Source: Penicillus capitatus (Eukaryota; Plantae; Chlorophyta). From it: a DNA stretch of 64,000 bases. How positions within the stretch are numbered: position 1 is the first letter of the stretch; each line of letters starts with the position of its first letter. The position numbers and the translations under genes were made by a program. Under the pieces are notes generated by a model. It was not told the origin of the DNA. It saw only the letters and a list, made by a program, of their open reading frames with translations, and made no database searches. The stretch lies in assembly GCA_965649825.1 (NCBI GenBank), contig OZ287696.1, forward strand, positions 2,263,724 through 2,327,723. The letters run 5' to 3'. Shown here in pieces: positions 5,791 to 62,722 of this stretch.

Positions 5791-7243
5791 ATGTTCATCG
5801 CTGCGTTGCGATGCGGCACTCGGGCTTTACGTGATCAACGCGCATTCGACGGAATCTGCCACGCATACCATGCCGTTGTCTATCGGCAAAACGGCAATCC
5901 CCAAGACGTGCTGTCGTATGAAGAGCTGCCACGGAAGGAAGAGATCGGCAAAGACGAGATCCGACTGAAAATCTTGGCCGTCATACAACAACACCGATCT
6001 TCGCTTCCCTGACGAAGGTCTCCGCGACAGGCGCCCCTAAACCCAGCCGATATCAATACGATCTTCGGATCGTATCCCTTGGCGCCTCCAGAAGACTCGG
6101 AGACGTTTCCACACATTCCCGGACACGAAGGCGTCGGATGCCTCATAGAAAAGGGCTCCGAGGTCTCTCCTTTTAGCCAAGTCACGATTACTGCAGGATT
6201 TGGATTCTGTGGTGAGGTTGAGGGACTGGCCTGTGGTGATTTGCTCATACCTCTGGCCTCACACCAAGGCACGTGGACGGAAGAGGGTGTGTACAAAGCT
6301 CGGTATTGGCACAAGATTTCAAACAGCTTTCCGATAGACATGGCTGCGACACTGGCCATCAAGTCTGAATCCTCTCGTGCCCACTCTCTATGTAAAGGCC
6401 TTCTGACACAGTCCGCCTACCGCGTGGTGTCTTATACATGATTTTGTGTCTTTGAATGCCGGAGATGTGATCGTGCAAAACGGAGCGACGAGTGCGGTGG
6501 GTCAGTATGTTATCCAGATGGCACGGGTGCTCGGTATCCAGACGGCCAACATCATCCGCAACAGGAACGTCCTCCACGTTTTCTCTCACTCTTTTAGTGG
6601 CGGCAAAATGTGTTAGACCACATCGCAAAGAAACGATGGAGTATCTTCAGTCCCTTGGGGCAACGATCGTTGCATCAGAAGACAACATCCGACCTGCCAT
6701 GTGTATGTCAGATGCATCGATGTCGTCATAGTGTGATATGAAAGAGTGAGATGGTATGTAGATGCAACTGATCTTCCTCTGGGGAGCTTAGGACTGAACG
6801 GCATCGGTGGCAAACACATCGGCCTTCTTACCAAACACCTCAAGTCAGAGATGGGTATCGTCGTTTTGCTCATGTCTGTGTCTTGTAGGCAGTCCTCGAC
6901 GGTTGTGACCTATGGTGGCATGTCCAAGCTGCCGCTATCGATTCCCAATGGCTCCTTCATTTTCAAAGATCTCACATTCAAAGGGTTCTGGTGGTCGGGT
7001 CACACATCGCAGAAGCTCGGCTTTCAACAGAAGGCGCAGCTCATCGATCGCATCGCCGATTTCATTCAGCAGCATAAACTGACCATCCGGTGAGCAGCTC
7101 TCTATCCACCAGAAGACACACGACTAGCCATGTTGATCAGGTGTAAGAGGTATGCACTCTCAGATTACAACGCAGCCCTTGCCGTACACACAGAGCCATT
7201 CAGAGAGAGCAAAATCCTCTTTATACCAGACACATCTAAATGA
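5791..7243 (+). CDS. MECR: Mitochondrial trans-2-enoyl-CoA/ACP reductase (MDR family), 7 introns
   Basis: Spliced motifs APLNPADINTIFGSYP, GHEGVG, NPPTAW, QNGATSAVGQ, VTYGGMSK, FIFKDLTFKGFW; N-terminal targeting-like peptide. Confidence 0.92.
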
Positions 7244-12168: not shown

Positions 12169-12350
12169 ATGGGTGGTGGTCCGTGTTTGGCGAGTCGTCG
12201 TCTTTCGTTCGTTCGCACTTTGGCTTTTACCATATCAACCAGAACGCTCTCTTCGTTGATCAATGAGCGAGATATACGATATCTCTATCGCAGTTATAAC
12301 GTGCACTCTCAAGGATGCGTGTAAACCATTGCACCATGAACTTCGTATTG

Positions 12351-13247
12351 TTAAAACGCAAGAGATCTCTGCTGATACCATTCATGTGACAAACAAAGAC
12401 AACGCTCAATGCTCTCGACGTCGAACACACCCGTCTGTACATAGTCTAAGCGCACGTCGCTGTCATCATAGGATGTGTGAGAGCAACGGTAAGTACTTAA
12501 GACGTCGCCATTGGCATCGACGACAACGGAGAGTATGGCGTCTGCAAACGACGCTTCGCGTTCGGTCGGGTCAATGATGAGGACGTCTTCGAAGCGCCCG
12601 ACCGTTAGTGCAAGAGGAATGGCGTTTAAGGCGATCGGCTTGCCATCGCCGAAGCCGACAACCATTTCGGCACGTTGATCAGCATCGATCTCGACGACGG
12701 GCAATTCCATTCGCTTCAATACGGCGATGCACGATAGCAGACAGGCATCGAATACGGCACCGTCTGCTTGAAGTACGGATGTCGCTAAGAGCAAACGAAA
12801 ACGCGATGTCGCGTTGGGAATGATGAAGTTCTCGTCGACAATGACGTCGGCGGCGCCGAGAACCGTCTGCAGTCGATGTGCGCATTGCTTCTCGAAAAGC
12901 ATTGCTTTCTGACGGGTCTCGTTGCACAAGGACGTCCACTCAACGGTCACTCCAACGCTATTGCCTTGTGTACTTTCTTCGACCAACAGCACCTGTCATT
13001 TCACGACCATCGCCGTTTGGGCTGCTCTCCTGTCGATGGGTCTTGCCGTGCCCGTCGTCGAAACGACCGTCGAGCCCAGGCGCGTCAGAACCTGTGCCTG
13101 TCCATCGTCGCTCTTAGACGTCGTTTCAACCGAAACCGCCCGCGCCTCGAGTAATGCGCGTTGTCCATCGAGTCGCTGACCTTTGCGAAACAGCTCGGCA
13201 CAGGACCATCGCGGAAACAAAACACGATTCAGCGAGACATGCGTCAT
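12351..13247 (-). CDS. RRP43: Exosome complex RNase PH-like subunit, RRP43-like
   Basis: R-x-DG-x-R N-terminal motif (RLDGQRALLEARAVSV), RLGSTVV, VLQADGAVFDACLLSCIAVL, LIIDPTEREAS; GC-AG intron 12993-13046. Confidence 0.8.
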
Positions 13248-13281
13248 ATCTATCGAACAACAACGGCAATCCCATCCACGC

Positions 13282-14079
13282 TCACGCCAACACGAATTCA
13301 GCCGGACCGTATCGCAAACAGACGAGCGTATCTTTCCGTATATCTCGGGCCACACGGATCTCATCATCAAGATAGAGATTCTCAAACCTAAAAGCAGAAG
13401 CATGGACACGATCCATACATAGAGGGCGTAAGATCTGACCATCCCTTGCCGAAGGGCGGTATGCGAAACGGCTGTTGACTGCCTTCTTGATAGAAAGCCT
13501 TCTCGAAAACGAAATCCAGTCTCTGTGACGAGGCCACCTGAATCGAAGCATCGACGACGAAACGGGACTCCGGCTCAAATTCGATAATATTCTGTAGACG
13601 GCCGTTATCGACATCGACCACCTAACCAACCCCCTCGACACATCACTCTTTCACGCCGGAGCAGCTAGATCACACTTGGAAAACATCTCCAGGCGATTTC
13701 TTCACAAATCTGCAATTGTCCAGGATGAACAGCACTTCCTACAAGGGTGGCTGTTTGGGGTTTGAAGGATGGATGGTCATCCATCATGTGTGACTACCTT
13801 TTCGGTTGTCCATAACATCTGCCATGTGGCCGTGCTGTCAAGACCCGTCGTCTTTTTCCCTTCTCCATACGTCTGCAGCTTGTCCACGCACTTGAGAATT
13901 GCGTTTTTCTGCACTGGCGTCGTGTTTCTGCCGCGATTTGTGTCCTGGACGAGGCGGCGGAGTTCTTCGACGACAGGACGTGCCGGCGAACGTACAAACA
14001 TCTGTCCGAACGGTGTTGATTCCGCCCGAATCACAGTGAGCGGTCTCGCCATCGGTCGAGCCATCTGCGCACGTCGCAT
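13282..14079 (-). CDS. Plastid lipid-associated protein / PAP-fibrillin family, 3 introns
   Basis: TWQMLWTTEK|EVLFI...PPFGKGW|FENLYLDDEIRVARDIRKDTLV is typical of the small fibrillin subfamily; transit-peptide-like N-terminus. Confidence 0.88.
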
Positions 14080-22747: not shown

Positions 22748-24077
22748 TTATTTCTCTTCTCTCGTTCGATGGCGAAGCCCAGCTCTTGCTAAAGACACAT
22801 CAGACAGTGAGAAGATCCGTTTGCCGTGATAAAACGCTGTGCCATCACATTTTGCGGAAGCGGATGGTGATCCAGCCATCGGATGAGATCCTCTTCCAGA
22901 AACGGATTCTGCTCGAGGCGGTGTTTTGCTTGACGCCGCCCTCTTCGTTTCTTCCCCTGCCAGCCAACCAGCAGACTTGTACAAAATCAATGCAACGACC
23001 ACAGAAGCAAAAACAAGCATCATCCCACTCATCATCCACAGAAACGATATCGAATCCGAGGGACGCAGGAGATAGAGCCATTGATCCAGCAGACCTTCCA
23101 ACACACAGCGATACATCACAGGGAGGAGGGGTCTGTACGGAATACCTAGGTGTTTCGTCAAAGAGATGGCGGCGGCATAGATCTTTGGAAGATGTCCAGT
23201 GTATCTGGGAGTCAGCGTCATCTCAATGCTTTCCAGTGGCGCCGTCTCGTCTTCTCTGTAATGCTCAATGAGGACAATCTCAACCATCACGCGATTCTGG
23301 AAACGCATCAGCAGTCGTGCTGGAAACTTCCACAGCCTGATATCACAAACTGCCCTCATTGCTCAAGATCATGCATGACATTCCATTTTTATCACTTAGA
23401 CAAAAAATGCGAGTAATCGTGTACAGGTTGTCCGGTGACAGCGACGAAAGATTCGTGAAGTTTGGCTCCCCCTTCCGATCGTAGCACCGTTTGCGCATGA
23501 AAGACTTCAGGATCTTTATCTTCCTTTTCGAGCGTCAGTTGCAGAATGATGTCTACCTGTAGACACAGGAAATTGATTTGGTGTCGTGCAAAAGGAGAGG
23601 TACGTCATCTCCTGAATGGAAATAGCGCCGAGGACGATCTTCCTGTTGGATGCTTGGCAAAGATGTGATGTCTGACAGTCTGAGATGCATGGTCGCATGC
23701 TCTGTTCGAGTATCGAATGTGACGGGAGTTTTCACAGACGTCCATGACGGACTCCATCTCCTGTTTCAGCATTTGACGTCACGTCAGGGCGAGGATTGGA
23801 TATACCGAACACCCGTAACGGATGTCAGAATAAGAACACCCCAAGTGGCAGAAAAGAGACAAGGAATCAATGCAGTATAGGCACAGCAGACGGCACAGTT
23901 CTGCAAAAGACGACGGAACATTGGCTCGTTTTTAGTTGCGTGAATAAGCGGGATAAACCAGAGATCTTTTTGCTGATCAGGTTCATTCAAGTCGTGTACC
24001 GATAGCTTGACGTCGATGACGAAACGGTTTTTTGATGGAACGACGTCATGTCTTATCATTACGGCATAGACGACCAT
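22748..24077 (-). CDS. Hypothetical membrane protein, multi-exon; 5' structure uncertain
   Basis: ORFs 23784-24110, 23553-23735 and 22748-23359 join through short GT-AG introns; hydrophobic segments near both ends. No family recognised. Confidence 0.55.
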
Positions 24078-24437
24078 TCGTGGCCAAGGAGTTTGGACTG
24101 AATGGCACATTTATCTCTCTTGTGCAAGGATTTCCCAAGCAGTCAGCCCTGCATCCGACGCCCAGTCGCGTTCGTTGGAACGTGGTGCATTTCTGCCGTA
24201 GGTGTCACATCAGATGCGTCGCAGTGATCCAGACAGCCCTGCGAAATCGAGGCGGAAGTCCGCCGCGGCGCCACAAATGTACCACCGTGGAGCGTGTTTC
24301 GCTGCAATGTCGGCGACGCAGGATCGAAGACCGGTATCGCTCATCCTTGGTCCATGACTGTCCCTCGTAGCCCTCGAGCAGAGACGTAGGTCGCCAGCAG
24401 GGTGCCGAGACAGAGGGTCGTCAGTCGGGGACCAACG

Positions 24438-24621
24438 TGTCACTCGTGTCAATGGACAGCTGTCCACTTTCGTGCAGCTGACCGCGGAGACGCGTCGATG
24501 TGACGCGTGTGTACGTTCTACGCGTATAAATCCGAACATTAAACGACACAACAGTCTTTGTAACCTGTAAACCTTCGTCGTTACTTTGTCGTTAACCGCG
24601 TGGTTCATCGACAGCGTGACA
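24438..24621. mobile_element. Possible solo-LTR/MITE-like piece inside the copy-A-specific insertion
   Basis: 184 bp bounded by TGTCAC...GTGACA with internal TATAAAT and ATTAAA; absent from copy B; no target-site duplication found. Confidence 0.3.
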
Positions 24622-26772
24622 ACTCGTCGCTTCCGTCGTTGACGCGCCGCCCACCTCACTACACGGACACGGCCTCGCTGGCGACGGGACCGCATTCGCA
24701 ATTTTTGAAGGCGTTTTACGCCACCCCCGAACTCGGCTGAAAGCACGCGGAAGTTTCGGAGTTGGGCCCTCCGATCTGTCTCATGTCGCGTAATCCCAGC
24801 GCTTGGGCCAGCGTCGCAAACGATGAGGCTGCACCGAGCGAGACGCGACCGCTGCCTGTCGGCCAAGTTGCTCTCACGGCGACTCCCCGACGTCTCCCTC
24901 GTCTTCCTGCCATTCGTCCGTGACGACTTTCTTGACGACTCTTTGCGAGTCTGACGGACCGAGGCATGCTGTTCTTTGACGTTTCTTGACAAGACGACGT
25001 TTTCTTGCCCATTCATTGCAGGTTTTGTGGCAAGTGCACGTGGTAGACTGGTGTTATTCAACCGTTTTCCCTTAATTGCCTCACTCACTCTCAGCGTGTC
25101 GTGGTACTGTGTAAATACTTAACTATCACACAGCACATGTCTCTGACGAACTTCGACACCCTTCATTCTTAGTTGACACAGTCTTTCTTCCTGATGGGAC
25201 GTGGTGCAGATTCTTTCCGACCGCATTTTTTGGCCGACTTCAGCTTACTCCGTTACCTTCTGGTTCGCGGGCAGTCCGTAGCGGAAAGCGGTTCTCTGAC
25301 GTCGAAGAAGGCGGCCGACGGTCAGAGTGAAGGCTTGCAGGAATGTTTGTGCGTGCGGGTGGAGATGGCTGACGACGAAACTGTATCGAGGCGAGAAAGG
25401 CAACATTTAACTAAAGTCGTCAAACGAAATCGGTTAAGAGAGATTCCCGCGGGGCTAGGAGAGGTCCTTACTCCTGGCGTCGGAGAAAAAATACAGCAAT
25501 CGTCTACGCACGGAGGCAGTCGGAAGTTATTCTCGTCCAGACCCGTCCTTATGTCGGTCTGGTTAGAAGAGTGTTTTCCGGCGGTTTTTACAAAATCGGC
25601 TGCCCGAACTTCTTGGATGTTTTTTTTTCCATTTCCCCTGACGGGGCGTGGCACATGTTCATTCAAACGCCATGTAAATGAGGAATTATATATATTCTCA
25701 GTTGACACAGACGTGGTCGTCGCTTGTAAGATCTTTCATCTTTGAATTCCTAAATCCTTTACCCACAAGTATCCCTGCTTCTATATTCATGGATCCCTAT
25801 CTGTCCACTGGTCGGTGTGAAACTTGGAGGCCGCTATAGTACTTAGAACATCGCTCTGTTTGTATCGACAAACCCCGTCTTTTTTATAACTCTTTCATTT
25901 CAAGAACATAGTCTCTCGCGCCGGCCGATGCAAAAGTGAGTTATGTCTCGAAACTTAAAGTCAGTCTGTAACACAACATACTTCTCTTCCCATTTTGAAG
26001 GTTCGGAGACGAAAATCGAATCTCTATTCCGATTTATATCTAGACCATCATCATTTTGGCCCATGTGGCACATTTAGATACTCCTCGCCTGTGATACTCA
26101 GCGACCTTTCCGATGCTCTTGTTCGACCTCCGACAGTTTCGCTCTTCTATGAAGCAATGGCAGTTGAACCGCTGCTGCTTGCGAGGCTGCAATCCAAGAT
26201 TGCTTCCCCGATGGCATCTGACGTGCAACGAATCCTTCGTTGAGCACCGATCGCATTCTGCTTGCTCGTTTCGTACAATGGACAAGGTACATACTGCAAA
26301 GCATTTCAGGCTGCCGTTGGACAACACGAAGGGTCCAAATGGCAGTCCAAGGCTCCAGCATGTTCTCATAGTTGTCCGACGAAACGATCAATCCTTGAGT
26401 CGACGGTAAGTATCAGACGGATTCAATTTAAACATATCCGCGGCACCAATTTTAGAACCATCCGTTTTCTTTATTCATCTCGATATACAGAGAGCATTTA
26501 GCATGCGTCGACGACACCAGATATTTGTTCAGGTACTGATGATGAATACGGGTGTGTCCAGCTAATAAACTGCCACTCCGCTTCACTCGGAGCCTCTACG
26601 CGGAAACTACATACAGATAAACAGACACGTCTCATTTAACCAATGCATGGACATTTAAATCGTGCATCCGCCGGGCGAACGCACGTAACGCATTTTCTCC
26701 TCCGTTTATTCGCTGCCTGTCTGTGCTTCTGACGTGTCGTAGTTCTCGACCATCCACATTTTTCTCCACACA

Positions 26773-27109
26773 ATGCCTCGTTGCGAAACACGTTGCAGAT
26801 GCGCCATCGGTCTTTGCGGTCTGGACTGCCCATGCCAATTACATTGTCTGTGCAAAACTGGTTCTCCTACGGAAATCTACAACGGCCCGTGCGGCTGTGG
26901 CCACTGCGACAAATCGTGCGCTGCTTGTAACAGAACGTCCGAGGAATTTCGTCGCAAAACCATGCTTGGACGTGTCAGAGGAGGAATTGTCCTTGCCTCA
27001 ATATTCGCAGGCACCACCTTCGTGGTCATCCGCAGAAGAATGAACCGCGCACAAGTAACCACGACGAGCATTTTTTCAAACACAAATTCTTATTCCATAG
27101 GCTGCCTGA
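26773..27109 (+). CDS. Cys-rich (metallothionein/CXC-like) tail-anchored mini-protein, 96 aa, copy A
   Basis: 13 Cys in CxC clusters, one C-terminal hydrophobic helix flanked by Arg/Lys; 46-nt GT-AG intron 27055-27100 then GCT GCC TGA, mirrored in copy B. Confidence 0.75.
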
Positions 27110-27833
27110 GTCGCTCGTCGAAAGAAATTTTCCGCAGCCGTAGATATCGCAGAGTACAAAGGAATCGATGGTGTGGTTTACTACGACCTCGATGTTTTTG
27201 TCGGTCGGCGTGGAGGGCTGAGCGAAAGCACTGCCGGCCATCGCATCTTCCGTACACGCATTTTCACCTAGGCCTTGTATGATAGAAGAGAGTTAGAAGT
27301 TTAGGCCGCTGCGGGCGCTACAGTTGTTGCTACATTATGAAATGAATTGCGTACAAACAACGTTTACCAACACCACGGCCTCGCTCGCTTAGGGAGAAAA
27401 GTTGCGGCCGGCTCGCGTCTTACCTCAACGTGGCACGAGAGGACACCGAGGCAGAGGCAGTCGCTGATGCACTCTGAGCACAGTCGAATATTCCAGATGC
27501 GCAGGCACGTCGGCTGATACAGGGAAAAAAGAACATGTGGCATGCAGACAGGGTGAATGCGTTGTTGGGCTTGGTAGAGTGGTTCTTCCTCGCTCGCCCG
27601 AAGATTTTTGTCTCGTGGCTACAGCGCGACGCGAACGACTCGTGAACTGCTGCTGCATGAGAAATGCGCCGAGTGGACCGTCGATGTCCGCGGAAGCTGC
27701 TGAGAACCCAACATCGCATGACCCATCAGGTTGCGACGTGGAGATGCCGATTAAGTCACCTCTTTCCCGAGGTGGGCAAAATCCACCGCGCGCTGGGCGA
27801 GAAGCATAGTAGGGAATACTTACCCAGATTCTG

Positions 27834-28576
27834 ATGGCCTGTCATCACGTCGAGTAGAATCTAAAAGTGTCGCCGCCGGATGGCTCGGCACCCTACATGC
27901 CCCTCAGCGAGATTCGGTCGAATGACAGACAGCAGGAAGCATACTGCCGGGTCCTGTCTCAGTAGAACGAGCTCTACGCAGAATGTCGCCGCATGAGAAC
28001 GCAGGTCACACAGGCTCTTGTCCTACACGAGCAGTGCTCCGTGGAGTGGGACGACCCCTCTGTGTCCTCGAAACAGGAGCTGTTTCGCCGCAGGGAGAAA
28101 GCTGCCAAGGAGCGCACCGGCAAGGCAGGTTCAGGAGGGAAGCACAGACTCCAGGATCCGCCTCCGAAGGAGGTGGAGTTTGTGAATCCGGACTTGGAGG
28201 AGTACCTCCTGGCATCGCTCGAGTCGATGCACAAGAGACTCATCCCAGACTGCAGAGTCTGATCTCCGCTGCGATGCACGTCCACGTTAAGAGCTTGTCG
28301 GATCCAGACTCCCGGCAGCGCCACGCCGTGAAGCGCCTTGCCATCGACCAGAGAAACGACATCACGAGACTGGGCATCGCTCCCAAGCGACTGGCGCGAG
28401 ACGGCAGTGGAGCGAAGAGGTACAGAGCCGTCGAAGCGACGACCGGGGTCTCGTCCTCCACGAAGGATGCTGGATGCCGTTCGTCGAGCGTCCCTTCGAA
28501 GATGAGGAGGCGTCAGGATGGGAGACGACTGCCGACCACGTCCTGCGTCGTCTGCCGAAAACGACTTTCGATCTGA
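27834..28576 (+). pseudogene. Orphan ORF disrupted by in-frame TAG stops (copy A)
   Basis: Homologous to 62723-63488; each copy has stops where the other has sense codons; possible 35-nt intron near 28256-28290. Confidence 0.5.
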
Positions 28577-28675
28577 GCGAAGCAGAGGCGAAGCAGACGA
28601 TGCTCTCGGACAGATGACGACGGCCAAAATGACTTACTCACTCGATTGTTCTACGACGTCGACGGCGCCATTCTC

Positions 28676-29633
28676 ATGAAACGTGTGGCCCTTCGGCTTT
28701 CATCCGACGTGCGACGCCTGACCTCTGCGCGATCCCGAGACCTCGCCAAGCGGCGTCGACGGCCGCTCTCGTGTCCCCCGGTCTTCCCGAAGGACGGATC
28801 CCCCGAAGAGACGACTCTGCTCTCGGTGCGGCTCCGTGCCCGAGCTGGAGTTCGCCAGAGGGACTGCGGCGCGTGACGACTACGACGCCATCTGCGTTCT
28901 CGGAGGCGGCCACTCGGCCGACGGAACGCATCCGCCCTGGGTCTCGCGGCGACTCGAACTCGCCCGACGTCTCCTCGAGCGCCAGGCCGGTCCCGCCGTC
29001 CTCCTGTGCGTCGGTAAGCGATTCCCTTCGGACGTCTCCTTCGGAGGTATTTGTGCAGGGGGAGGAACACCGCACAGGCCGCCGCTGTGCGACGAGCACG
29101 GCTACGCGGTCCATGAGGCGACGCTGCTCGCGGCGGACCTGATCTCGCAGGGCGTCGATGCCCGACGACTCCTAAAGGAGTATGCCTCCTACGACACCAT
29201 CGGCAACGCCTACTTCACAATGACGTCCCACGCCATCCCTGCGAAGTGGTCTCGCGTGGCCGTCGTCACCAGCGAGTCCCACATGCCGAGGTCGAGAGCT
29301 CTCTACACCGACATCTTCAGCCTGGGGAGCGCTCACCTGCCAGATTCGTACCGTCCTGCGATCACCCGATCTCCTGCCGATCTCCTGCAACCTAGGTTCC
29401 TGCTGGAGTTCTTCGCGGCCTCGGACGAAGGCGCCCTGTCTCCTGAGGTGCTGGAAGCGCGGCGCGCGCGGGAGGCGGCGAGTCTCGCCGAGTGGAAGCA
29501 GAACTTCGCGAAGATCGAATGCCTGGCAGACTTCCACCTCTGGCTCTACGCCACCCACAGGTGCTACGCCGTGGCTCGGCAGCACGAGTTCGCATTCTCT
29601 GACATCGGCGACCTCGATCGACTGACCTATTAA
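28676..29633 (+). CDS. DUF218 (YdcF/ElyC-like) domain protein; 5' end unresolved
   Basis: DAICVLGGG, GGGTPHRPP, EYASYDTIGNAYF, VVTSESHMPRS motifs; 45-nt GT-AG intron after LLCVG. Confidence 0.82.
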
Positions 29634-29643
29634 ACAAGTTGTG

Positions 29644-31012
29644 TTAAAGGCGAAACTCTTTCGACTGGACAGGTTCGTTTCCCGATCCCCGTCGCCACGT
29701 TCCCGGCATTTGGTCCTCGTCCGTCGCGTCCATCCTCCACTGCTCGTTGAACAGGACGGTCGACAGATACCGTTCGCCGAAGCTCGGAAGAACGACGACG
29801 ATCAGCTTGTCCCGGTTCTCCGAGCGCAGCCCGACGCGCAGGGCGGCCTCGACGGCGGCGCCGGACGAGATGCCTGCCAGGATCCCCTCCTCCGTCGCCA
29901 GTCTCCGCGCCATGGCGATCGCTTCCTTGCTCGACACCTTGATCACCTCGTCGATCAGGTCCCTCCTGAGGACCTTCGGAACGAATCCCGCGCCGATGCC
30001 CTGGATCTGGTGGTAGCCTGGCCGGCCGCCGGACAGGACGGCGCTCTCGGTCGGTTCGACGGCGATGAGCTGTATCCCCGGGTTCTGTTCGCGCAGGAAC
30101 TGTCCGGCTCCGGTGATCGTCCCTCCGGTCCCGACGCCCGCCACCAGAATGTCGATGGCACCGTTCGTGTCGTGCCAGATCTCCGGCCCCGTCGTCTCGT
30201 AGTGCGCCTGAGGATTAGCCGGGTTCTCGAACTGCTGCAGCATGTAGGCTGAGGGCAGCTGCCTTCGGATCTCCTCTGCCTTCTGGATGGCCCCTCTCAT
30301 TCCCTAAGGCACCACACCCTGTCCGACCCGCCGAGCGCGGCCGGTTCACCTGCGATCCGTCCGTCAAGACAAGTCTGGCGCCGAACCCCTTCAGCAGAAC
30401 GCGCCGTTCCGTGCTCATCGTGTCCGGCATCGTCAGGACCAGATCGTACCCCAGAGTGGAGGCAACGAAGGCCAAACCCACTCCGGTGTTGCCGCTCGTC
30501 GGTTCCACCTACTCCACAGATTCTCCACCCAAAAAACGGCTGCGAGGTGGCTCGCACGAGTGTCGTGACTCCCGGCTTGATCCATCCTCTCCTCTCCGCG
30601 TCACGGACCATGCTCAGCGCGATCCGATCCTTCACACTGGCCACCGCAGCCACGACATCACTTTGCAGAATCGCGTTAGGGCTCGTGCCTCTTGCAGGGT
30701 TCCATGGTCTCGAGCTTGGCGGCGATCTGCGCGAAGCTGGTCCTTACCACGCGGTTCAAGAACACCTAGCAATCGTCGGCTGCCGGTCCGTGCGAACGGA
30801 AGTCATACCGTCGGCGTGTCCCCTATGGTGGCGCACACGTCGGCGGAAAGCTTTGCGCTGCCGTTGCGTTTGATGTCGGCCGCGAGCCCACCGTCTGCTT
30901 CGCTCTGGCCTCCGATCTCCATCCTCGGCCGCAGACGCGCGCGTCGAGTACTGTGTCCAGCTTTGTGACTCGAAACTTTCGGTGAACCTTTCCACGGAAG
31001 GACAGTCCGCAT
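29644..31012 (-). CDS. cysK: Cysteine synthase / O-acetylserine(thiol)lyase, transit-peptide-like N-terminus, 4 introns
   Basis: IGDTPTV|[13 protein letters not shown]|SVKDRIA (PLP lysine), [47 protein letters not shown]. Confidence 0.95.
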
Positions 31013-31095
31013 GATGCAAAAAAACGACAACCCGTACAGGAGAACGAACGCACGCGTTTTGGCAAAGATGATGACGACTTCCATCACTGAGGCGT

Positions 31096-32750
31096 CTAAT
31101 TCACCTCTTTGATCAGCGTCAGAGTCTTGCCCTGGTCCCAAAACGGAAAGTCCTTCTTCTCCTGTTGCAGCTTGAACGTCTTTACCTCACTAATCGTGGC
31201 TCCTTCACGGGCTAACTCCATCTGCCTAGCCGCATTCTCCCTATAGCGCTGGCTATAGGGATGGCACTCGACGGAGAGGGCCCCCTTGCGCTCGTCGGAG
31301 TTGAGGTTTCTCACCAGATTCGACAGCTTCTTCCAAGCACGCTCCGTCCTGATCTTTGCGATAGGGTAGTACACCAGGCGATAATAACGACCCACGTCGA
31401 CGTTCTTAATGGAGAGTGGCTTGAACATTCGACAGTATCTGGAAGAGACTCGGCAGGAGTATGAAGATGGGCAAAGACTGACCTGTTCACCCGAATATGC
31501 AGTTTGCGCTCCCTGACAGTCCACCTCAGCCAGTCTCCGTCCTCTTCAATGTCTCCGCCCCCGAAGATTGCCTTCATGTGTTCCAGGAGAGATCTGTCGT
31601 CTGACAGCAGCCAGAACTTAAGCTGGATGCGGAAGTACGGGAAGGTGCCGGACTCGACTAATCGTCCAGCGAAGAGTCCATAGCTGCTGTCGATCCAACC
31701 CATGAGCCACTTGTTATTGAGTTGGGGCCTCCACTGGCACGTCTCCTTGAAAACAAATCCCTCGTCCTGCCAGACGCCCAGGTCCTTGTAGCGCTGCACC
31801 CATTCCCTGAAGGTGTCCCTGGACCGTTGGAGGAAGAGATTGCCATTGAGCAGATGGATGATACACGGTAGGTGCTTGTCGTCTTTCACGTAGAAGATCT
31901 CTTTGGTGTCGTCGGCGTGGCCGAAGTGTAGAAGGGAGCGGATCTTTCTGAAGAACTGTTTGTCTGAATGGTGCAGCGCGAAGTAGGGACGCCCGTTAGG
32001 GCCGACCTTGAATGGGAGCTGTGCCTCCGTGATGCCAATGAACCACTCAGCGAAGTGCGTATCCAGATGGTCTTTGTTGTCGGGTTGGACTTGGTGAAAG
32101 GCCTCAAGGCTGGGACGGGACAACGGCAGACTTAGCGGATCGTTGCTCCGATCTGGACGAGGTGGTCTAGGCGACCCGTGTCTCAGTTCCAAGTCCTCCA
32201 GGGACCCTACACTCTCTTTCTCGCTCTCTTCGAGCTTCACTAGCTGAGAGTCCGTGATTTCCATCTTCTCGGTTTCTTTGTCGACTCCGTCAGCTTTCCT
32301 GAGCTGGTGTACAATCGAGCGGACCATCCGATCGGACGATGGATCGCAGTGGGAGAACGGCAGAACTTTGAAATTCGCGAGCCGTTTTGTTCTCTCCGGT
32401 GTCTCCCTGTGCATCCTTCGCAGCCGCTTGGCATCTCTTTTCGTTGCCTTGTGCTTACGGACGAGGTCGACCGCGAGGACGCTCTCTTCCGGCGAGTGCG
32501 TTCTCCGATAGACTCGCTGCCGGATTTCTTCTTCATCTGCCTCGACGTCCTTTGCCTGATTCTTCACCTCCAACTTCTTCGCGTAGCCGTAAAAACGCTC
32601 GTCTGCGTCTTTGGGTCCATCGTCTGCTTGACGCGCGCGACCTCGCGCGAAGGAACGTGAAGTCGTTGCCGTCTTCGTTGCTAGTCGATCCCGCAGACCG
32701 CTGCCGACATTCCATCCCGTGAAGTCGAGGAGACGGCAACTCCTGTGCAT
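31096..32750 (-). CDS. Nuclear-encoded double-motif LAGLIDADG protein with N-terminal extension and one spliceosomal intron
   Basis: Motif 1 FAEWFIGITEAQLPF...IRSLLHFG...IHLLNGNLFL; motif 2 KWLMGWIDSSYGLF; a 44-nt GT-AG intron near 31439-31482 joins ORF 31311-32750 to 31096-31438. Confidence 0.8.
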
Positions 32751-34872: not shown

Positions 34873-36340
34873 GTTCTTAAGGACCACAGGCGCTTCATCT
34901 ATCACAATAACACAACACCGGTCAGGCTTGAGCTATGCGCGAACTTTTAAGTTGTGTTGACTGCAGAGAGTCACGGTTTTTGTAAGTAGAGGAAATGTGC
35001 AGATAGGTGTTCAGTCGGTGCAAATAGTGTGGACCGAGAAGACTATTATCGATCTGGAAATCACACAAATGGTCGACAGACGGCCACTTCCCGAAGAGAA
35101 TGTGCAGGGAACCAACCTAACCTGTATCGTCACTCAATCGTGTGTGCGTAAAACAAACCAATCGTCAAACGCGCGTAAAGCATGAGTTTATGTGAAACAT
35201 AAAGAATACCATTACATACCATCCGTTCGGTTCGATTTATGCGCATCGGACTCATCTTGACCGAATAACAAGCCAGAAAAAATTAATCCGACTGAAAACG
35301 GCCAGTTCGATTTATGCGGATCGAACACATCTTGACATTGACAGAATAACAGCTCAGAGAAGCCTGGAATCTTGGATGATGAGGTGCACACAAAATCCAT
35401 TCCTTGCCCGAATACCTACCGAACGATAGCTTTAACCAATTCATGCCCGTCACGAACCCATGCAACCAGTCGCCTCATGAACACAACTTCTCTTCCGTTG
35501 CCGCTGGCAAACAAAACAATCGAAACCTTGTCTCGAATGGGCGCTTTTCAGTCTCGTCGGCATCCCAAACCAAACGGCACAAACCTGTTCTTTGGCGATC
35601 TAACCGTCCGACCACACTTCCGTTCCCGCATCTCCCAGACCAATTCCCAGCGCCTCGGCACTCGACCTACCGCCGCATGCAAACCCCGTGGAGCGTAATA
35701 CCATACACACCGTCTAGACTACCACTCTCCCGTGTGCAAACTAACGTCCTCCTCAAGCTGACTACGAAGCAAAGCTTCGTGGCGAAGCCGACGCAAGAAA
35801 TCCACGGACAATAGCTCTTTAGGAAAAAATCTACGCGAAACAGCCGAAGTATGCTTGCAATGGAAACGAAAAAAAACAAGGAAAAAACAACAAGCCTACG
35901 ATACCGAGAACGGAAAGACAGCGCTGGCGCGGGAAAGAAGAAACCACGTTGCCTACGCAGACACTCAAGAAAAGAAAAAAATCGCGTCGAGCAATGGCGA
36001 TCGCAGAACCCTAGGTCAGCACGGCGCAGTCAACGAAGGAACGTGGCCCCAGAGCCATCCTCGTTCCTTTGCCAAGATCATCCCACGCTCTCCGCTCCGC
36101 GCATTCATTTAGTCGTCGTGCTTTGGCCTCACCGCGTATTCGCCATTCGTGTTCGCTCTCTCGTCACACATCACCAAGTAACGCATTAGAGCGCCAATCT
36201 CGTATCCTGTTGTGCCGACCCTTGACATTGGCTTCTCTCCTCACCCGCCCATCTTGACAAAGTTGCGCCTTCCGCACGAACAGGCCCGATACAACCTCCG
36301 ACAAAACCTAATCCGCACGCCAGACCGCTTCAGCGGTCAT

Positions 36341-37354
36341 TTATCTTCTGGATCTCTTCCGAGAGCTTCTAGGTGAACTCCCCGCTCCAATGTCGACTTT
36401 CCGTTTTGGATCTTCCGTTCCTCTTAACCTCGCCAGCCGTTCTTCCTGAGACCCCGTGTTGCGAAGATTATCAGAACGCCTCGCATCTCTTTCTCTTGAC
36501 ACTTCTTCTTCGTACGTCAAGGCCCGCGTACGACGTTTAGAACCGTTGCCATCGGACGCCATATCTTGTGTTTCCATAACGACGTCTCCATCTTCGTCGA
36601 CAGCAAAAACTTCCGCGGGCGGCTCGGCGTCGTCCGCTTCTTCCGCGGGCGGCTCGGCGTCGTCCGCTTCTTCCGCGGGCGGCTCGGCGTCGTCCGCTTC
36701 TTCCGCGGGCGGCTCGGCGTCGTCCGCTTCTTCCGCGGGCGGCTCGGCGTCGTCCGCTTCTTCCGCGGGCGGCTCGGCGTCGTCCGCTTCTTCCGCGGGC
36801 GGCTCGGCGTCGTCCGCTTCTTCCGCGGGCGGCTCGGCGTCGTCCGCTTCTTCCGCGGGCGGCTCGGCGTCGTCCGCTTCTTCCGCGGGCGGTTGCGCCT
36901 CGGCGGCCTCGTTTAGGATGAAGTTGACGAAGGCAATGGCGAGTGCGCGTCGTCGTCGACGGACCACTCCCACACGGGCGTTAAGCTCTAACCTCATGTT
37001 TCTTACGAACATCGCAATTCTGAAAACCGTAAAATCGTCGTTGTGGGCGTTCATGTTGGTCACCAAAGCATTCCTCAACCTTGTCGCAAAGTCAGCCCAC
37101 GTGTACGGCAACGCGTCTTCACCTCCACCAAAACCCCCGGTCACATGACGCGGACACATCTCTGCACTAACGGATATGAGTGCGAATATGTTATCCGGCC
37201 CGTTTCCGTTATAGTACGATTTTAATAGACGACAAGAGTAGGCTACATGGGCGTCGAAGAAAATACCGTATCTTTCCTCATCGACGGCTTCTTGGCGCAA
37301 CCCGCTCATGGTGTGGTCTGTCAATATCTGAGCAACGAAGGCAAACGAACTCAT
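36341..37354 (-). CDS. Intronless orphan protein, left-arm paralog, with 9x PPAEEADDAE and basic C-terminus
   Basis: 337-aa open frame, alignable over its full length with 38189-38857 (ILTDHT, FATxLRNAL, FRIAMF, LTYEEExSRER). Confidence 0.75.
   Translation of the reverse strand: MSSFAFVAQILTDHTMSGLRQEAVDEERYGIFFDAHVAYSCRLLKSYYNGNGPDNIFALISVSAEMCPRHVTGGFGGGEDALPYTWADFATRLRNALVTNMNAHNDDFTVFRIAMFVRNMRLELNARVGVVRRRRRALAIAFVNFILNEAAEAQPPAEEADDAEPPAEEADDAEPPAEEADDAEPPAEEADDAEPPAEEADDAEPPAEEADDAEPPAEEADDAEPPAEEADDAEPPAEEADDAEPPAEVFAVDEDGDVVMETQDMASDGNGSKRRTRALTYEEEVSRERDARRSDNLRNTGSQEERLARLRGTEDPKRKVDIGAGSSPRSSRKRSRR
36611..36892. repeat. Perfect 30-bp tandem repeat, 9 full copies plus a partial
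   Basis: Unit TTCCGCGGGCGGCTCGGCGTCGTCCGCTTC at 36611, 36641 ... 36851 with no mismatches. Confidence 0.98.
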
Positions 37355-37432
37355 CGTGGTCGTGTTTCCTAGAAAGTTTGAAAACTTGACGCCAAAAGCT
37401 ATCGTGCAAGGGAAGTTTAATGAGAAGTGGCG

Positions 37433-38094
37433 AAAACCCTAATACGCGACAAAACCCTAACGCACGACGTCTTTTATACTCGCAAAATGGACTAATAGAA
37501 GATTTAATGGAAATCTGCGGTTAACTTAAAAAACTCTTATGGCGATTGGCTGATTCGACGACACTGTGATGGGACGTCTGCCTATTAATGTCAGCACATG
37601 CGGCAAAATCGACTGAGCCAGAAGCTTAGGTAGCTAACGCCTCAACCAAGAGGTCAGCTGGTGTTGTGTTTAGCCGTAACGCCCATGATAATGCGCTCAT
37701 CTACCTACACTTGTGTCGATCTCCAGGTGACAGGTCGTAGGTTCTCTATACCTTCCCATCCACAAATAGACCCGCGGCTCTACGTCACAGATTCCAAGCA
37801 GATTCCGGAATCTTCGAAGAATATTCCTCTTTGTTACTTAAAATAAAGTACCCTATAAAAGCGTTGTAGCTGTACAGATCTTGTCTTTCGTTTGCAAGAC
37901 TTTACGTTTTAAAAGGTCTACGTGCGCCCACCGTTCAAATTGTTTCATCTAAAACCCTACGCGACAACGGCCGACATCTAACCGTAGGACAGGAACGTCC
38001 AATCGCACTGTCGTCGAATCAGCCAATCCCACGAGAGTACAAAACCTAATTTTAGACATCAATAGTATATTAGGCACTTACGCAATAGGGTTTT
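37433..38094. promoter_or_regulatory. Divergent promoter region with mirrored CCAAT-containing motif and telo-box-like AAAACCCTA motifs
   Basis: GATTGGCTGATTCGACGACA-x-TG-x-GAT-x-GGACGT at 37544-37577 and its inverted copy at 37995-38028; AAAACCCTA at 37433, 37451, 37951 and inverted near 38086. Confidence 0.5.
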
Positions 38095-38188
38095 GTTACG
38101 TGTTTGGGTTTTGTGAATCCTCCGTAGAGTTCTCCTTAGGCAATACCTGTTGGCGTCGAGTTTCCATATCTTTCGAAACATTATCACG

Positions 38189-38857
38189 ATGAGTTTGTTT
38201 GCTTTGGTAATTCGGATTTTGACAGACCACACCCTGACAACGTTGGGCCAAGAAGTCATTGAACGGGAAAAGTACTGTGTTTTCTTCTACGACTTTGCAG
38301 TCTATTCTTCTGATATTTTGCGGACGCACGACAACCTAAACGTGCCAAGTAATATGAGCGCGCCCCTGTTCGTAAGTACAGAGATGCATCCGAGTAATGT
38401 GGCTTGGGGTTACGGAAGATGTGGAGAAGCGTTGACTCGTACGTGGGATCACTTTGCAACAGTCTTAAGGAATGCTTTGGCGACTATCATACACGCACAC
38501 ATTGACGAATTTGCAAATTTCAGAATTGCGATGTTCGCAAGATACATGTGGTCAGAGCTCAGCGCTCCTATCGAAGTGGTCCGCCGACGAGAGCGTATTA
38601 TCTCAACTGCCTTGGCAAACTTCATTATAAACGAAGCAATCGAGGCGCAGCCAACCGAGCCGGAGGAAGTGCATGTCCCTAAACGTCGTACGTGGTCCTT
38701 GACGTACGAAGAAGAATTGTCAAGAGAAAGAGAGGCGCGGCGTCACCATAATCTTCGGAACACGCGGGCTCGGGAAGAACGGCTGGCGAGGTTAAAAAAA
38801 GTGGGAGATTCAAAACAAAAGGTTAATAGTGGGGCAGGGAGTCAACCTAAGAGGTAA
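38189..38857 (+). CDS. Intronless orphan protein, right-arm paralog (~222 aa)
   Basis: Open frame starting MSLFALV, aligned with MSSFAFV of 36341-37354; lacks the acidic repeat. Confidence 0.72.
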   Translation: MSLFALVIRILTDHTLTTLGQEVIEREKYCVFFYDFAVYSSDILRTHDNLNVPSNMSAPLFVSTEMHPSNVAWGYGRCGEALTRTWDHFATVLRNALATIIHAHIDEFANFRIAMFARYMWSELSAPIEVVRRRERIISTALANFIINEAIEAQPTEPEEVHVPKRRTWSLTYEEELSREREARRHHNLRNTRAREERLARLKKVGDSKQKVNSGAGSQPKR

Positions 38858-39924
38858 CGTCGAAGTTGTCTGGTGCGTGGATTAGGATTTGCTGAAGGTT
38901 GGATCGGGCGCATTTGAGTGGAAGGCGAAGCTTTATTGCGACGGGCCGAAGCACGACGACCAAGGAATGCGAGCAGTGAAGAGCATGGGGTGATGATGGC
39001 AAAAAAGAACGATGATCAATGTGGGGCCACGTTCATTGCTTAAAGGCGGCGTGCTGACATAGAGTTCTACTATCTCCGTGGATCGACGCGAGTTTTTTGT
39101 GCGTCTTCGTAGGCAAAGTTTTTTTTTTTGTGTTTCCGTCGTTAAGCGCTCGTTTTTTTTTGCGGGTGTCATAAGCTCGTTGATTTTTCTCTCGTTTTTT
39201 GTTGCCTATGCAAACACACTTCGGGTGTTTTGCATGATTCTCTTTCTTCTAAAGAGCCGTAGTCCGTGGATGTTTTGTGTCGGTTGCGCCACGAAGCATT
39301 GCTTAGTAGTCAGCTTGAAGGAGACGTTGTGTTCTTGAGTCGAATGGCTGCTTGGGTTCGCGACGGGCATGCGTTGGATACGGGTATCATCAGGGATCCA
39401 TTCAAGGGCTTTGCATGTTCTCTATCCAAAAATTCACTGCTCGATGCCGTGGCTATTTCTCTGTCAAGACGAGTTCGTTCCGTATAAATCGAACTGGCTG
39501 GTTTTATTCGGATTTGTTGTTTTGGCCTGTTCTCTGTCAAGACGAGTTCGATCCGTATAAATCGAACCAAACCTGCGTATGTAATGGCATTTTCTATATT
39601 TCGCATAAGTTGTTATTCCACGCGCGTTGAAACGATTGGTTCTCTTTTGGGCAACACTCCTTAGATCATCTCCGATTCTGGTACGTGTATCATGTATAGC
39701 TTAGTTGACCACCCCGTGCGCCGCCCATGCAGTAAAAGAAGTCCGCTGTGTCAATAACAGAGTTTTACGTCCATCTCAGGAAACCGACCGTATGCGCTAT
39801 TCTGCCGGACACGACAGTATCTTTAAAGATGCAGTATCACAACTGCAGCCTCGTCTTGTCAAAAGAGGACATACATATCTCATGCTTGGCGAAGAATCGG
39901 CTGATGGCAGACTTGCGAATGCCA

Positions 39925-56600: not shown

Positions 56601-56691
56601 ACGGATCCGATCGTTCTTCTTCTATTGCGTGTGACGCGTAAAAAACGTGTTTCCATGGACAATGCGTTAAAGAAAGGAACGTTAGCTGCAT

Positions 56692-59900: not shown

Positions 59901-61684
59901 GCTGCAAAGCGTTCAAGGCTGCCGTTGGACAACCCAAAGGGTCCAATGACAGTCTCAGACTCTCGCGTGTTTTCATAGTTGTCCGACGAAACGATCAATC
60001 CTTAAGTCGACGGTAAGTATCAGACGGATCCAGTTTAAACATATCCGCGGTACCAATTTTAGAGCCATCCGTTTTCTTTATTCATCTCGATATCAGAGCG
60101 CATTTGGCATGCATCGACGACACCAGATCTTTTTTCAGGAAATGGCGTTAATCTTTCCTGTCTTATCCGTTCAAATCATTCAGCGAGTGCCAAGGTAAAA
60201 CCCAAGCTGTCATCTGTCTCTTTTTCGAAGTTCAGCTCCAAGCTAAACAAAAGTGTTTCAGCTATAACGGTGTGGGTGTGGCATTCGAATGAAACAAGTC
60301 ACTAGAGCAAAAAAACCAGTCCACTACCCACGTGCTTGTGGGCATCGCTACGGCAACAGATTCGACGAAAGACACACAAAGCTGTAACTGTGATCCTGAG
60401 ACTGACTCAGTTGTTCTCAACTCAGGTTATCTACTAGAGAGCCCTTGGGCGGATTAACTTGATGGCTTACATGTCTGTGTCGACTGCCTCTGCCTTGACA
60501 TAGAAGTGCGAAACACACGGCAAAAGTTTTGCTCTACAGCTTAGAACCCGAAAATATTCATTAGAGAGTCGCATGGTTCGCTTTCAAGAAGAGCAACTCG
60601 GTACCATCATCCAGAAAGGCGGCTCGAAGATCAGAGACTCGTAGATAGATCTGCTTTCTTTAGACAGCGCAACCTCCGCAATTCCTTCATCATGAAAGAA
60701 TAGCTACGAGACTACAATCGGAATGACTCGCGGGAATATGCGAAGCCGGAGAAAACAACACAGACCAGTCTTGTCAAAACGAGCATCATGCAGCAAACCG
60801 CGGTTTGGTGTCGAAGGAGCGTCCCTTTGTCTTCCAGGTTTCGCTTTCTTTATCTCCGCCCTCGACGGCGGTTTCTACGAGTCGAGAACGCCGTCAAGGC
60901 GCGGTGGTCCTTAGATGCCAAGTTCGCAGTTACCATCTCTTGCACATCTGACACTGCGAAGCAGATTTGGCCGTAGACAAGAGGCGACTGCTGAACGAAT
61001 GGGTTCAGGAAGTGTCGCGTCATACAGCTGTTTTCGCCCACGCATCACCGCAGTTTTCGCATGGAGCCATTGGAGCCCCAGAATCATGGACTGAAGTCCA
61101 TCCCGCACTGTCCATCCAACAGTGAAGTGTTGCTGTCTTAGGTGGAGTTGGAATTCGATGGTCTTTCCGGCATCGGGGTACTGTGGGGTTCCATTCCACA
61201 AGACTTTCATCGAATATGGATGACCAAGATGCAAAAACAGATTGTGGACAGCTCACCACAGTGGACGGTTTTCCGCATAACCATAGGATCAGCGGCCTCT
61301 GGGACGGTTTCCCTGACCGGTTAAGAAGAAACAACCGTAGGAGAACTTCATAAGATGCAGCAGAAGGTACTCTCATGGATGGGCAGCTTTTTTATGCCTT
61401 CTTAGGCTGTGCTGTTAGCAAAAATAGACGGCACAGATCCTCCGCTCTACGACTGGGAGGGTGATACCATGCAAGTGCACCCCGGAGACAAACTTCAGTT
61501 TCGATTCAGCCGCCTGCGTCGAACTACGGATGGACACGTCAGACGGTTGAGTTGACACGATAAATTCTGAGAACTTCGGCACAAACGAACACAATACACG
61601 TTTGCGCTTTTCGTTTTATCTTTTCGCGCCGTCTGTTTTTGGACATACTTCAGACTTCCAATCTTTCCGAATACCTTTTGAAGA

Positions 61685-62003
61685 ATGCGTTGTGCCTGTA
61701 ACGTCGGCCAATGCGACGCGAGTTGCTCGTGCCCAGACGCTTGCAGATGCAAATCGGGAAACCCGATGGTCAATTACTCAGAACCCTGCGGCTGCCGCCA
61801 TTGTGTCGCGTCATGTGGCGTTTGCAGAACGATTAATCGTCCTGGCGCGAAGAAAAAAGTGCTCGAACGCGTCGGTGGAGGAATGGTCGTTGCCACTATC
61901 ATTGCCGGCACTGTGGTAATGGTTCGCAAAAGAATGGGCCGCAGAGAAGTAGCCTCCGTCATTATCCCTTTCTGCGCTTACCTATTTCGTTTAGGTGGCC
62001 TGA
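61685..62003 (+). CDS. Cys-rich tail-anchored mini-protein, 90 aa, copy B
   Basis: 12 Cys with the same spacing as copy A, TM helix, 46-nt GT-AG intron 61949-61994 then GTG GCC TGA. Confidence 0.75.
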
Positions 62004-62722
62004 CACATCTGTCAAAGGAAGCGCTGCAGCTGTAGATTTATCTTCCACACTATTACTTCATTAGTGGTTGTTCGCCCACGGTGCCCATTTTTGTCGGTCG
62101 GCATGGCAATGTAAGCCCAACGGCCATGACAAATTTGGAGCCTATTCCTTACTTTGCGACTGTGAGACGCTAGAGAGAGTTAGAACATTCAGAGAGCTGC
62201 TCACGCACATCAGTTTGTCATCATCATTATGAATGTCGAATCTTTAGTCTCAAAATTCATGTGCCCCGCAACTTCGTTCGCGCTTAGGGAGGAGGAGAGT
62301 TGCGGCCGCCTCGCACCTTCAAAACGGCAAGGGAGGACACTGAGGCAGAGGCAGTCGCCGACGCACTCTTAACACAGGTGTAGATTCCAGGTGCGCAGGC
62401 ACGTCGGCCGATACAGGGAAAAAAGAACATGTGGCATGCAGACAGGGTGAATGCGTTGTTGGGCTTGGTAGAGTGGTTCTTCCTCGCTCGCCCGAAGATT
62501 TTTTGTTCGTGGCTACAGCACGATACGAACGACTCGTGAACTGCTGCTGCATGAGAGATGCGCCGAGTGGACCGTCCGCCAAACCGTAGAGAACCTGGAA
62601 CTTCGCATGACTTACGCGCTTGCGGCGTGGAGATGCCGATTAAGTCACCTCTTTCCCGAGGTGGGCAAACATCCACCGCGCGCTGGGCGAGAAGCTTAGT
62701 AGGGATACTTGCCCAGATTCTG

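Follow-up and report, generated by a model that had tools for sequence, protein, structure and literature searches.

What do two small cysteine-rich open reading frames inside a duplicated block encode, and why are they far more diverged than the DNA around them? The window (that is, the whole stretch of 64,000 nt of DNA that was analysed) holds exactly two such copies, here termed mini genes A and B, with the next-best match at E 0.17 (tblastn). The reading that we hold with moderate confidence is that they belong to a lineage-restricted family of spliced genes whose products would be tail-anchored and carry a metal-binding head, and that the two are ancient paralogues spared by gene conversion; metal binding, splicing, insertion into a membrane, topology and destination organelle are the inferred parts of this reading. 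Both genes were modelled as follows, in window coordinates.

26773..27054, + strand: mini gene A, exon 1 (ATG at 26773; 282 nt, 94 codons), made up of a Cys-rich head (nt 26782–26928), a basic linker, a hydrophobic helix (nt 26980–27030) and a basic tail
27055..27100, + strand: mini gene A, predicted intron (46 nt, phase 0, GTAACC...CCATAG)
27101..27109, + strand: mini gene A, last exon (GCT GCC TGA, that is, two codons plus stop)
61685..61948, + strand: mini gene B, exon 1 (ATG at 61685; 264 nt, 88 codons), made up of a Cys-rich head (nt 61691–61825), a linker, a helix (nt 61871–61921) and a tail
61949..61994, + strand: mini gene B, predicted intron (46 nt, phase 0, GTAGCC...GTTTAG), with CTTAC 13 nt before the acceptor AG
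61995..62003, + strand: mini gene B, last exon (GTG GCC TGA, two codons plus stop)

Once spliced, A and B would encode proteins of 96 aa with 13 Cys and of 90 aa with 12 Cys, respectively, which are 44–46% identical across 90 aa (tblastn E ~5e-25). An earlier reading, made from the sequence only, had described proteins of ~90–96 aa with 12–13 Cys, a shared Cys pattern, a C-terminal helix and a basic tail, all of which were confirmed on both copies; the 46-nt intron that it placed at the same position in each, followed by two codons and TGA, was likewise reproduced in A and B.

The search for family members that this reading had proposed recovered five additional copies with the same Cys framework: one lies on a further contig of the metagenome assembly that matches the window, and the other four come from the assembly of a related species. 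In the ENA metagenome assembly ERZ25074695, a contig of 488 kb matches the window at 99.7–99.9% identity, with no differences in or near the mini genes; 32 SNPs between the two are clustered at 51.8–56.9 kb (51799–56896), and none is found at 56.9–64.0 kb. Copy C, on a 687-kb contig of ERZ25074695, was found via a 68-aa fragment from a HMMER search and has the same layout, with a 46-nt intron followed by ATA GCC TAA; its contig has a coverage of 43x and that carrying A and B of 28x. The second assembly (ERZ26696514), reached through an exon of the neighbouring cysteine synthase, contains two contigs, each with one A-type and one B-type copy: A2 (94 aa; 71–72% identical to A; 48-nt intron; GCG TCC TAA) and B2 (90 aa; 68% identical to B and 74% to C; 46-nt intron; GTG CCC TGA). 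The seven copies represent five distinct loci (A, B, C, A2 and B2), and when six-frame translations of the collected loci were searched with a family HMM, only these copies came up (E ≤1e-43; next match at E 0.006). Gene calling in the metagenomes had given one copy from an internal Met only, one as a 68-aa C-terminal piece and one with the intron read through, while four were apparently uncalled; conserved spliced mini-genes of uncultured eukaryotes are thus missed or truncated by prokaryote-style metagenome gene calling.

Beyond these copies, a HMMER profile search of 1.84 billion representative proteins and word-index searches of 5.8 billion proteins (with spliced A, which matched nothing, and with a three-sequence profile) returned only ORFs of the same organism and no outside homologue, and in clusters at 90% identity the mini-gene ORFs are singletons from ENA. 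Two matches from a DNA scan of JGI metagenomes were rejected as off-frame translations of a bacterial DNA-methylase-like gene, and a DNA scan of IMG/VR gave no match. Searched with the seven members at E up to 10, Pfam yielded only sub-threshold hits to Metallothio_5 (E 0.03) and DUF4501; NCBIfam had no match to the mini proteins, and sequence matches in PDB, none of them significant, were rejected as chance transmembrane-helix similarity to the APP helix. The protein had been called undescribed, which agrees with the lack of a known-family match in Pfam, NCBIfam, PDB sequences and the large protein sets. Judged by these searches, the family is lineage-restricted and so far limited to two closely related organisms.

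Two further elements downstream of the stop codon are shared by the five loci.

27132..27144, + strand: conserved 3′ block CCGCAGCCGTAGA, 23 nt past the stop of A (62021–62036 in B; from the five-locus alignment)
27195..27204, + strand: conserved 3′ block TTTTTGTCGG (62088–62097 in B), nearly invariant at the five distinct loci

These blocks (GCNGCNGCYGTAGA and TTTTGTYGG), 20–95 nt past the stop, are retained at A, B, C, A2 and B2, and the DNA between is saturated; they may act as 3′-end or regulatory signals.

Start codon, Cys framework and the intron-plus-two-codon end are kept in 7 of 7 copies, and the only stop-free frame common to the seven is the sense frame. Between B and C, 22 of 41, 19 of 37 and 15 of 27 substitutions fall at third codon positions in three overlapping windows, and no codon periodicity was found elsewhere in the 3.8 kb common to the two. 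As one antisense frame shares its third positions with the sense frame of the mini gene, the weight falls on the stop-free sense frame, the retained start codon and the splice signals. The ratio dN/dS among copies, a check that the sequence-only reading had suggested, was determined by NG86 as 0.09 (A–A2), 0.18 (B–B2), 0.19 (B–C) and 0.26 (A–B). A sense-only open frame in all seven copies, together with ratios of ~0.1–0.25, indicates that the mini gene is a real protein-coding gene under purifying selection. Selection is uneven along the protein, with dN/dS falling in the helix and rising at those head positions that vary (0.34–0.54 within the B type and about 0.8–1.07 between types), and the mini protein changes ~10 times faster than CysK or the PX protein of the same neighbourhood (dN of 0.16–0.23 versus 0.015–0.02). 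The term 'hypervariable', given to the gene earlier, is apt for the fast-changing residues between the cysteines, but not for the framework, which is invariant, nor for a gene whose dN/dS lies well under 1.

A and B share the pattern C-x-C-x4-C-x3-C-x-C-x3-C-x-C-K-x-G-x-P-x6-P-C-G-C-x-H-C-x3-C-x2-C, with the last three head Cys forming CxxxCxxC. Across the seven copies, 30 columns of the alignment do not vary, among them 12 Cys, one His and positions of K, G and P. The 12–13 Cys lie within the first 52 residues, in a head that is 23% Cys, has few aromatics and contains CxC, CxxC and CxxxC motifs. Between head and helix runs a charged linker of 13–15 residues. The best 17-residue hydrophobic stretch has a Kyte–Doolittle value of 2.0–2.1 in A and B (1.7–2.3 over all copies), and the helix is free of Cys in 7 of 7 copies. 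From its end to the C-terminus there are 10–11 residues, which begin with RRR, RKR or RNR, carry Glu later in the tail in three lineages and have a net charge of +4 in A and B (+3 to +4 across copies); the 12 residues preceding the helix have a net charge of +2 to +5, and the flank on the C-terminal side of the helix is no less basic than that on the N-terminal side. No N-terminal hydrophobic stretch or signal peptide was found in the seven copies (maximum 15-mer Kyte–Doolittle value in the head, 0.4–1.2). A single near-C-terminal helix and no N-terminal signal sequence are what place a protein in the tail-anchored class, and the predicted architecture is that of a tail-anchored membrane protein, which would be inserted into a membrane; the C-terminal tail-anchor layout proposed earlier is supported by hydrophobicity, helix position and tail charge in all copies. 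AlphaFold2 models had pLDDT of 41 and 39 (with 3 and 7 input sequences, respectively) and no usable fold.

By definition, a tail-anchored protein enters the membrane post-translationally and keeps its N-terminus in the cytosol (PMC4154396). In the mechanism that we propose, the N-terminal ~52 residues would form a head facing the cytosol, held on a membrane by the C-terminal helix of ~17 residues and moderate-to-high hydrophobicity. For a head exposed to the reducing cytosol, the simplest role of 12 invariant Cys and a His within 50 residues would be that of metal ligands, and the head would most likely fold around metal. The metal could be Zn, Cu or Cd in thiolate clusters of the kind known from metallothioneins and CXC domains, or it could form an Fe–S centre, which the CxxxCxxC at the end of the head makes as possible as the thiolate clusters.

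The head could instead lie outside the cytosol, the protein being of type III (N-out) and lacking a signal peptide; its 12 Cys would then be joined by disulfides into a small knotted domain, at the surface or in a lumen, that serves adhesion or recognition. Heads as short as ~55 residues can be translocated without a signal peptide, and the present head has only ~55 residues. The relative basicity of the C-terminal flank also fits this orientation, and the 12 invariant Cys, an even number, would allow six disulfides. However, the net charge of +2 to +5 ahead of the helix disfavours translocation of that side, and Cys spaced as CxC, CxxC and CxxxC, together with an invariant His, are what one usually finds among metal ligands; moreover, a helix 10–11 residues from the end exits the ribosome only after termination, which means tail-anchored insertion (PMC4154396). 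An N-out head is thus unlikely, although the basic residues on both sides of the helix leave topology not fixed by charge alone.

For the cytosol-facing, tail-anchored protein of the preferred reading, a destination can be suggested with low confidence. Hydrophobicity of the transmembrane domain and tail charge set the destination, with high tail charge steering proteins away from the ER (PMC5450235, PMC4154396), and in plants a dibasic tail motif, defined with a tail of 3–8 aa, directs proteins to the outer mitochondrial membrane (PMC4154396). The RRR, RKR or RNR after the helix and the tail charge of +3 to +4 point to an organelle outer membrane rather than the ER as the target, with the basic residues on both sides of the helix perhaps directing the protein to the outer membrane of mitochondria, peroxisomes or plastids. 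The tail of 10–11 aa is, however, longer than the plant motif allows, and targeting rules worked out in plants and mammals may not hold in this host.

The setting of the two genes is a duplicated block with the following parts (the flanks and islands are unstranded).

24689..26533: left homogenised flank of A (58294–60139 in B; 92.3%)
26534..27385: diverged island of copy A, none of which blastn aligns to copy B
27386..31156: right homogenised flank of A (62281–66064 in B, window-equivalent; 94.1%)
60140..62280: diverged island of copy B, including about 1.3–1.4 kb upstream that is absent from A
28836..29633, + strand: DUF218-domain ORF (Pfam PF02698, E 1.4e-15), within the homogenised tract
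29644..30653, − strand: cysteine synthase (PALP, CysK), three 3′ exons (Pfam PF00291, E 4.9e-40)
31311..32750, − strand: 479-aa ORF, the last element of the block on its far side, with a weak LAGLIDADG-like signal

In copy A the order is mini gene (+), ~1.7 kb without coding signal, DUF218 (+), CysK (−) and 479-aa ORF (−). The island boundaries are sharp (A 26533/B 60139 and A 27386/B 62281). Identity between A and B is 52–59% in the coding region and 49–72% around the mini gene, versus 85–100% in the flanks, with 87–96% at 27547–28718 and 98–100% at 28719–30518 (DUF218 plus CysK); the segment of the 479-aa ORF is at about 75%. The coding sequences are therefore, as had been noted before, far more diverged than the flanks, but 'near-identical' overstates the latter, which average 90–94% and reach 98–100% only at 28719–30518. 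An island of 60–70% GC coincides exactly with that tract (63632–64000 onward in B; 11867–13665 of collected locus L003), a coincidence that indicates concerted evolution and possibly GC-biased gene conversion.

The mini-gene tree splits by type (100/100), whereas the CysK tree splits by species (100/100), and the DUF218 and cysteine synthase genes group by species. This contrast places the duplication before the species split, so that types A and B are ancient paralogues predating the split of the two species, each with a counterpart in the second. In the last exon of CysK, dS is 0.01 for A–B and 0.01 for A2–B2 but 0.27 between species, which indicates gene conversion of the flanks within each species that spared the mini gene. 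The same island is present in the second species, where flanks of 81–99% identity reach to about 160–300 bp from the mini gene, and blastn aligns nothing over the ~0.8 kb that surrounds it. Gene conversion thus keeps parts of the block near-identical within a species but ends a few hundred bases short of the mini gene, the one part of the block that is not overwritten. The A locus is syntenic between species, with PRMT, PX/Vps5 and PRC genes on the same side.

Against this stands the proposal of the sequence-only reading that the gene is a swappable cassette, that is, a recognition protein whose versions are moved between repeat copies under diversifying selection. Several observations speak for such a cassette: the diverged island is sharply bounded within flanks of 90–100% identity, the trees of mini gene and flanks conflict, the residues between the Cys change fast (with the ratios given above for non-invariant head positions) and all three differences between the two contig versions of the second species are non-synonymous, although three against zero synonymous is not significant. 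Furthermore, silent divergence between species is greater in the mini gene than in its neighbours: codons for the same amino acid differ in 57% (A–A2) and 41% (B–B2) of cases, as compared with 18–30% in CysK, PX and the 479-aa ORF (Fisher p 1.5e-7 and 3.6e-3), and the DNA immediately around the mini gene is 68–72% identical between species versus 77–96% nearby. Such an excess could each be accounted for by locally raised mutation, by allelic lineages of greater age, by exchange with family members not yet seen or by constraint acting on the neighbouring genes. Nevertheless, the A type lies beside PRMT and PX in both species, hence there was no exchange since the split; each type groups across species (100/100) and has its counterpart in the second species; the tree conflict is fully explained by the homogenised flanks (CysK dS of 0.01 against 0.27); and overall dN/dS is 0.09–0.26. 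The contrast between mini gene and flanks thus results from flanks homogenised by gene conversion, not from exchange of the gene, and the cassette proposal, contradicted by the constant neighbourhood of the A type, is rather improbable.

Other differences among the blocks were recorded. The ~1.3 kb upstream of B is also found at C, A2 and B2 and was therefore lost by A; an upstream gene in it was considered, since one stretch has a coding look in the comparison of B with C, and rejected (no codon periodicity, no tblastx frame standing out and an in-frame stop in A2), and the segment is treated as probably non-coding or decayed. The left flank of A at 24176–26519 has no counterpart at the orthologous A2 locus (compared with L006 13841–15563), so that side of the block was rearranged in one lineage. 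DUF218 is being lost from B-type blocks: copy C lacks 1.95 kb holding most of DUF218 and the CysK 3′ exons (L002 12172–12176), and B2 lacks 554 bp of DUF218 (L007 10882 versus L006 10883–11436). Inverted copies of the left edge of the block (22921–25020) lie past its right edge in B (L003 16885–17278 and 18941–19023; window-equivalent 68650–70788), and likewise in copy C, where L002 12413–12445, beyond the right edge, is an inverted copy of window 24204–24236. Only short inverted matches, and no terminal inverted repeats, were found between the block ends; a transposon was rejected for want of such repeats and on account of the synteny. In the second species, long arrays of a ~44-nt tandem repeat flank the block (L006 and L007, about 6500–6950; L009 500–6900).

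The predicted intron measures 46 nt in five of the copies and 48 nt in the other two. The GT–AG interval is always in phase 0 at the same codon, with donor GTA(A/G)N(C/A) and acceptor (T/A)AG in all copies and the stop exactly two codons past the acceptor. A-type and B-type introns are unalignable, yet these splice features are retained, and at 13 nt ahead of the acceptor the introns of the B type carry CTTAC or CTAAC (CTRAC). For comparison with the rest of the genome, introns of CysK and PRMT were checked by hand: CysK is in frame only after removal of 49 nt (30509–30557) and 46 nt (30304–30349), both GT–AG, and PRMT needs frame-restoring introns of about 41–50 nt; short introns are the rule in this genome. 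Given the kept splice features and neighbour introns of like size, splicing of the mini genes, as predicted, is well supported.

Retention of the intron would make the proteins longer unspliced ORFs of 169 aa (A) and 116 aa (B). Prokaryote-style gene calling did give such ORFs (169 aa), and the read-through tails of the B type are alike, but only to the degree that the nucleotide identity of the introns implies. The tails that translation of the intron would add (75, 28, 28, 15 and 37 aa) show no conservation between types, being unrelated in both sequence and length, whereas GT, AG, phase, the 46–48 nt interval and the stop 6 nt past the acceptor are kept even amid saturated DNA, as is CTRAC in the B-type introns. 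We consider retention quite improbable and the spliced form the probable one.

A dense Cys run in a membrane protein also recalls the cysteine-string proteins, whose Cys strings are palmitoylated, and the cluster might press the head onto the membrane by lipidation instead of binding metal; fixed spacing, invariant G, P, K and H and the charged linker of 13–15 residues suggest a folded ligand-binding unit, and a lipidated string is very improbable. That the mini gene is non-functional (a chance ORF, a pseudogene or a mobile-element fragment), for which the lack of homologues elsewhere and the repeated DNA setting might speak, is close to refuted by a frame, start and 12 Cys kept in seven copies and two species at dN/dS of 0.09–0.26, by the absence of any transposase or element domain in the mini protein and flanking ORFs and of terminal repeats, by the synteny of the A locus, and by protein divergence of 28–54%, which excludes an assembly-duplicate origin of the copies. 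In particular, neither the missing transposase domain nor an A locus syntenic in two species fits the CXC tail of a transposase, the known-family fragment that the sequence-only reading had weighed against its own proposal.

The surrounding genes are ordinary eukaryotic ones (GCN1, Mei2-type RRM, PRMT, PX/Vps5 and an ion channel). Among named organisms, chlorophyte green algae have the closest relatives of CysK, at about 70% identity, a lead that the host may be a green alga or a lineage carrying green-algal genes; no annotated genome has any protein of the window at 90% identity, and no tRNA or Rfam matches were found within the window. The 479-aa ORF and a paralogous 444-aa ORF (L003 14746–16080, −) are 66% identical with dN/dS of about 0.4. 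By eye, their conserved C-terminal half looks like a double LAGLIDADG motif, for which the only support comes from weak hits to LAGLIDADG_1 in Pfam (E 0.08) and to a profile from PDB (E 0.09). Inside the DUF218 ORF (29365), the window has two copies of an 11-nt unit, CCGATCTCCTG, and the ENA contig has three. A 30-nt tandem array (36550–36969) lies in a Pro-rich, extensin-like ORF (36341–37354, −), which is mirrored by an ORF at 38150–38857 (+) in a ~4-kb inverted repeat (35277–39522) with arms 71–82% complementary.

Cysteine synthase is linked to the mini gene at four of the five loci, and contigs carrying a CysK at 72% identity (GC 73%) have no mini gene nearby; the linkage is suggestive and may be a coincidence. 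A tentative extension of the preferred reading, which we put forward as a possibility with little confidence, would see in the protein a membrane-tethered metallothionein-like head on an organelle surface, co-inherited with cysteine synthase as a sulfur and metal stress module, with A and B kept apart by selection against conversion. The two types would perhaps differ in metal or partner specificity.

Among known systems, metallothioneins resemble the mini protein in the small Cys-rich head, the CxC, CxxC and CxxxC motifs, the few aromatics and the conserved framework with variable residues between, which is the usual metallothionein pattern; plant Ec/type 4 metallothioneins also use His as well as Cys. 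The mini protein differs in its transmembrane tail anchor, a feature not known from any described metallothionein, and in scoring above no family threshold: of the metallothionein family models, Metallothio_5 came closest (E 0.03–0.06; 14 bits against a 25-bit cut-off) and with three A-type members only. No mention of a membrane-anchored metallothionein was found in the literature searched; if the head binds metal, the mini protein would be the first tail-anchored metallothionein-like protein found, and would place metal buffering on a membrane surface, not free in the cytosol.

CXC and pre-SET Zn3Cys9 domains are nuclear, bind DNA or chromatin and are found within large proteins, as opposed to a small tail-anchored one. 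The first half of the head (CxC-x4-C-x3-CxC) presumably resembles the start of the CXC (tesmin/TSO1) pattern, which we take as a lead only; no match to Tesmin/TSO1 CXC (PF03638), TCR or Pre-SET (PF05033) was found among the seven members at E up to 10.

CYSTM proteins, for which metal chelation or redox buffering at the membrane has been proposed, are likewise small, tail-anchored and Cys-rich eukaryotic proteins (90–96 aa in the case of the mini protein), but have conserved Cys inside the C-terminal helix and a disordered, Pro/Gln-rich head (PMC2804304), whereas the Cys of the mini protein are in an ordered-looking head and none is in the helix; the seven members gave no Pfam match to CYSTM (PF12734). 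With the dibasic-tail proteins of the plant outer mitochondrial membrane (PMC4154396), the mini protein shares a short helix followed by RRR, RKR or RNR and the lack of a presequence, yet its tail is of 10–11 residues as compared with 3–8. Finally, as in other cases of concerted evolution with islands that escape conversion, paralogues that are near-identical within a species lie beside an old, diverged segment. Nothing here is unusual in kind; what is notable is that both species show conversion ending at this one small gene, a natural case of a short gene resisting conversion while its neighbours are homogenised, which permits a test of selection against homogenisation versus simple heterology.
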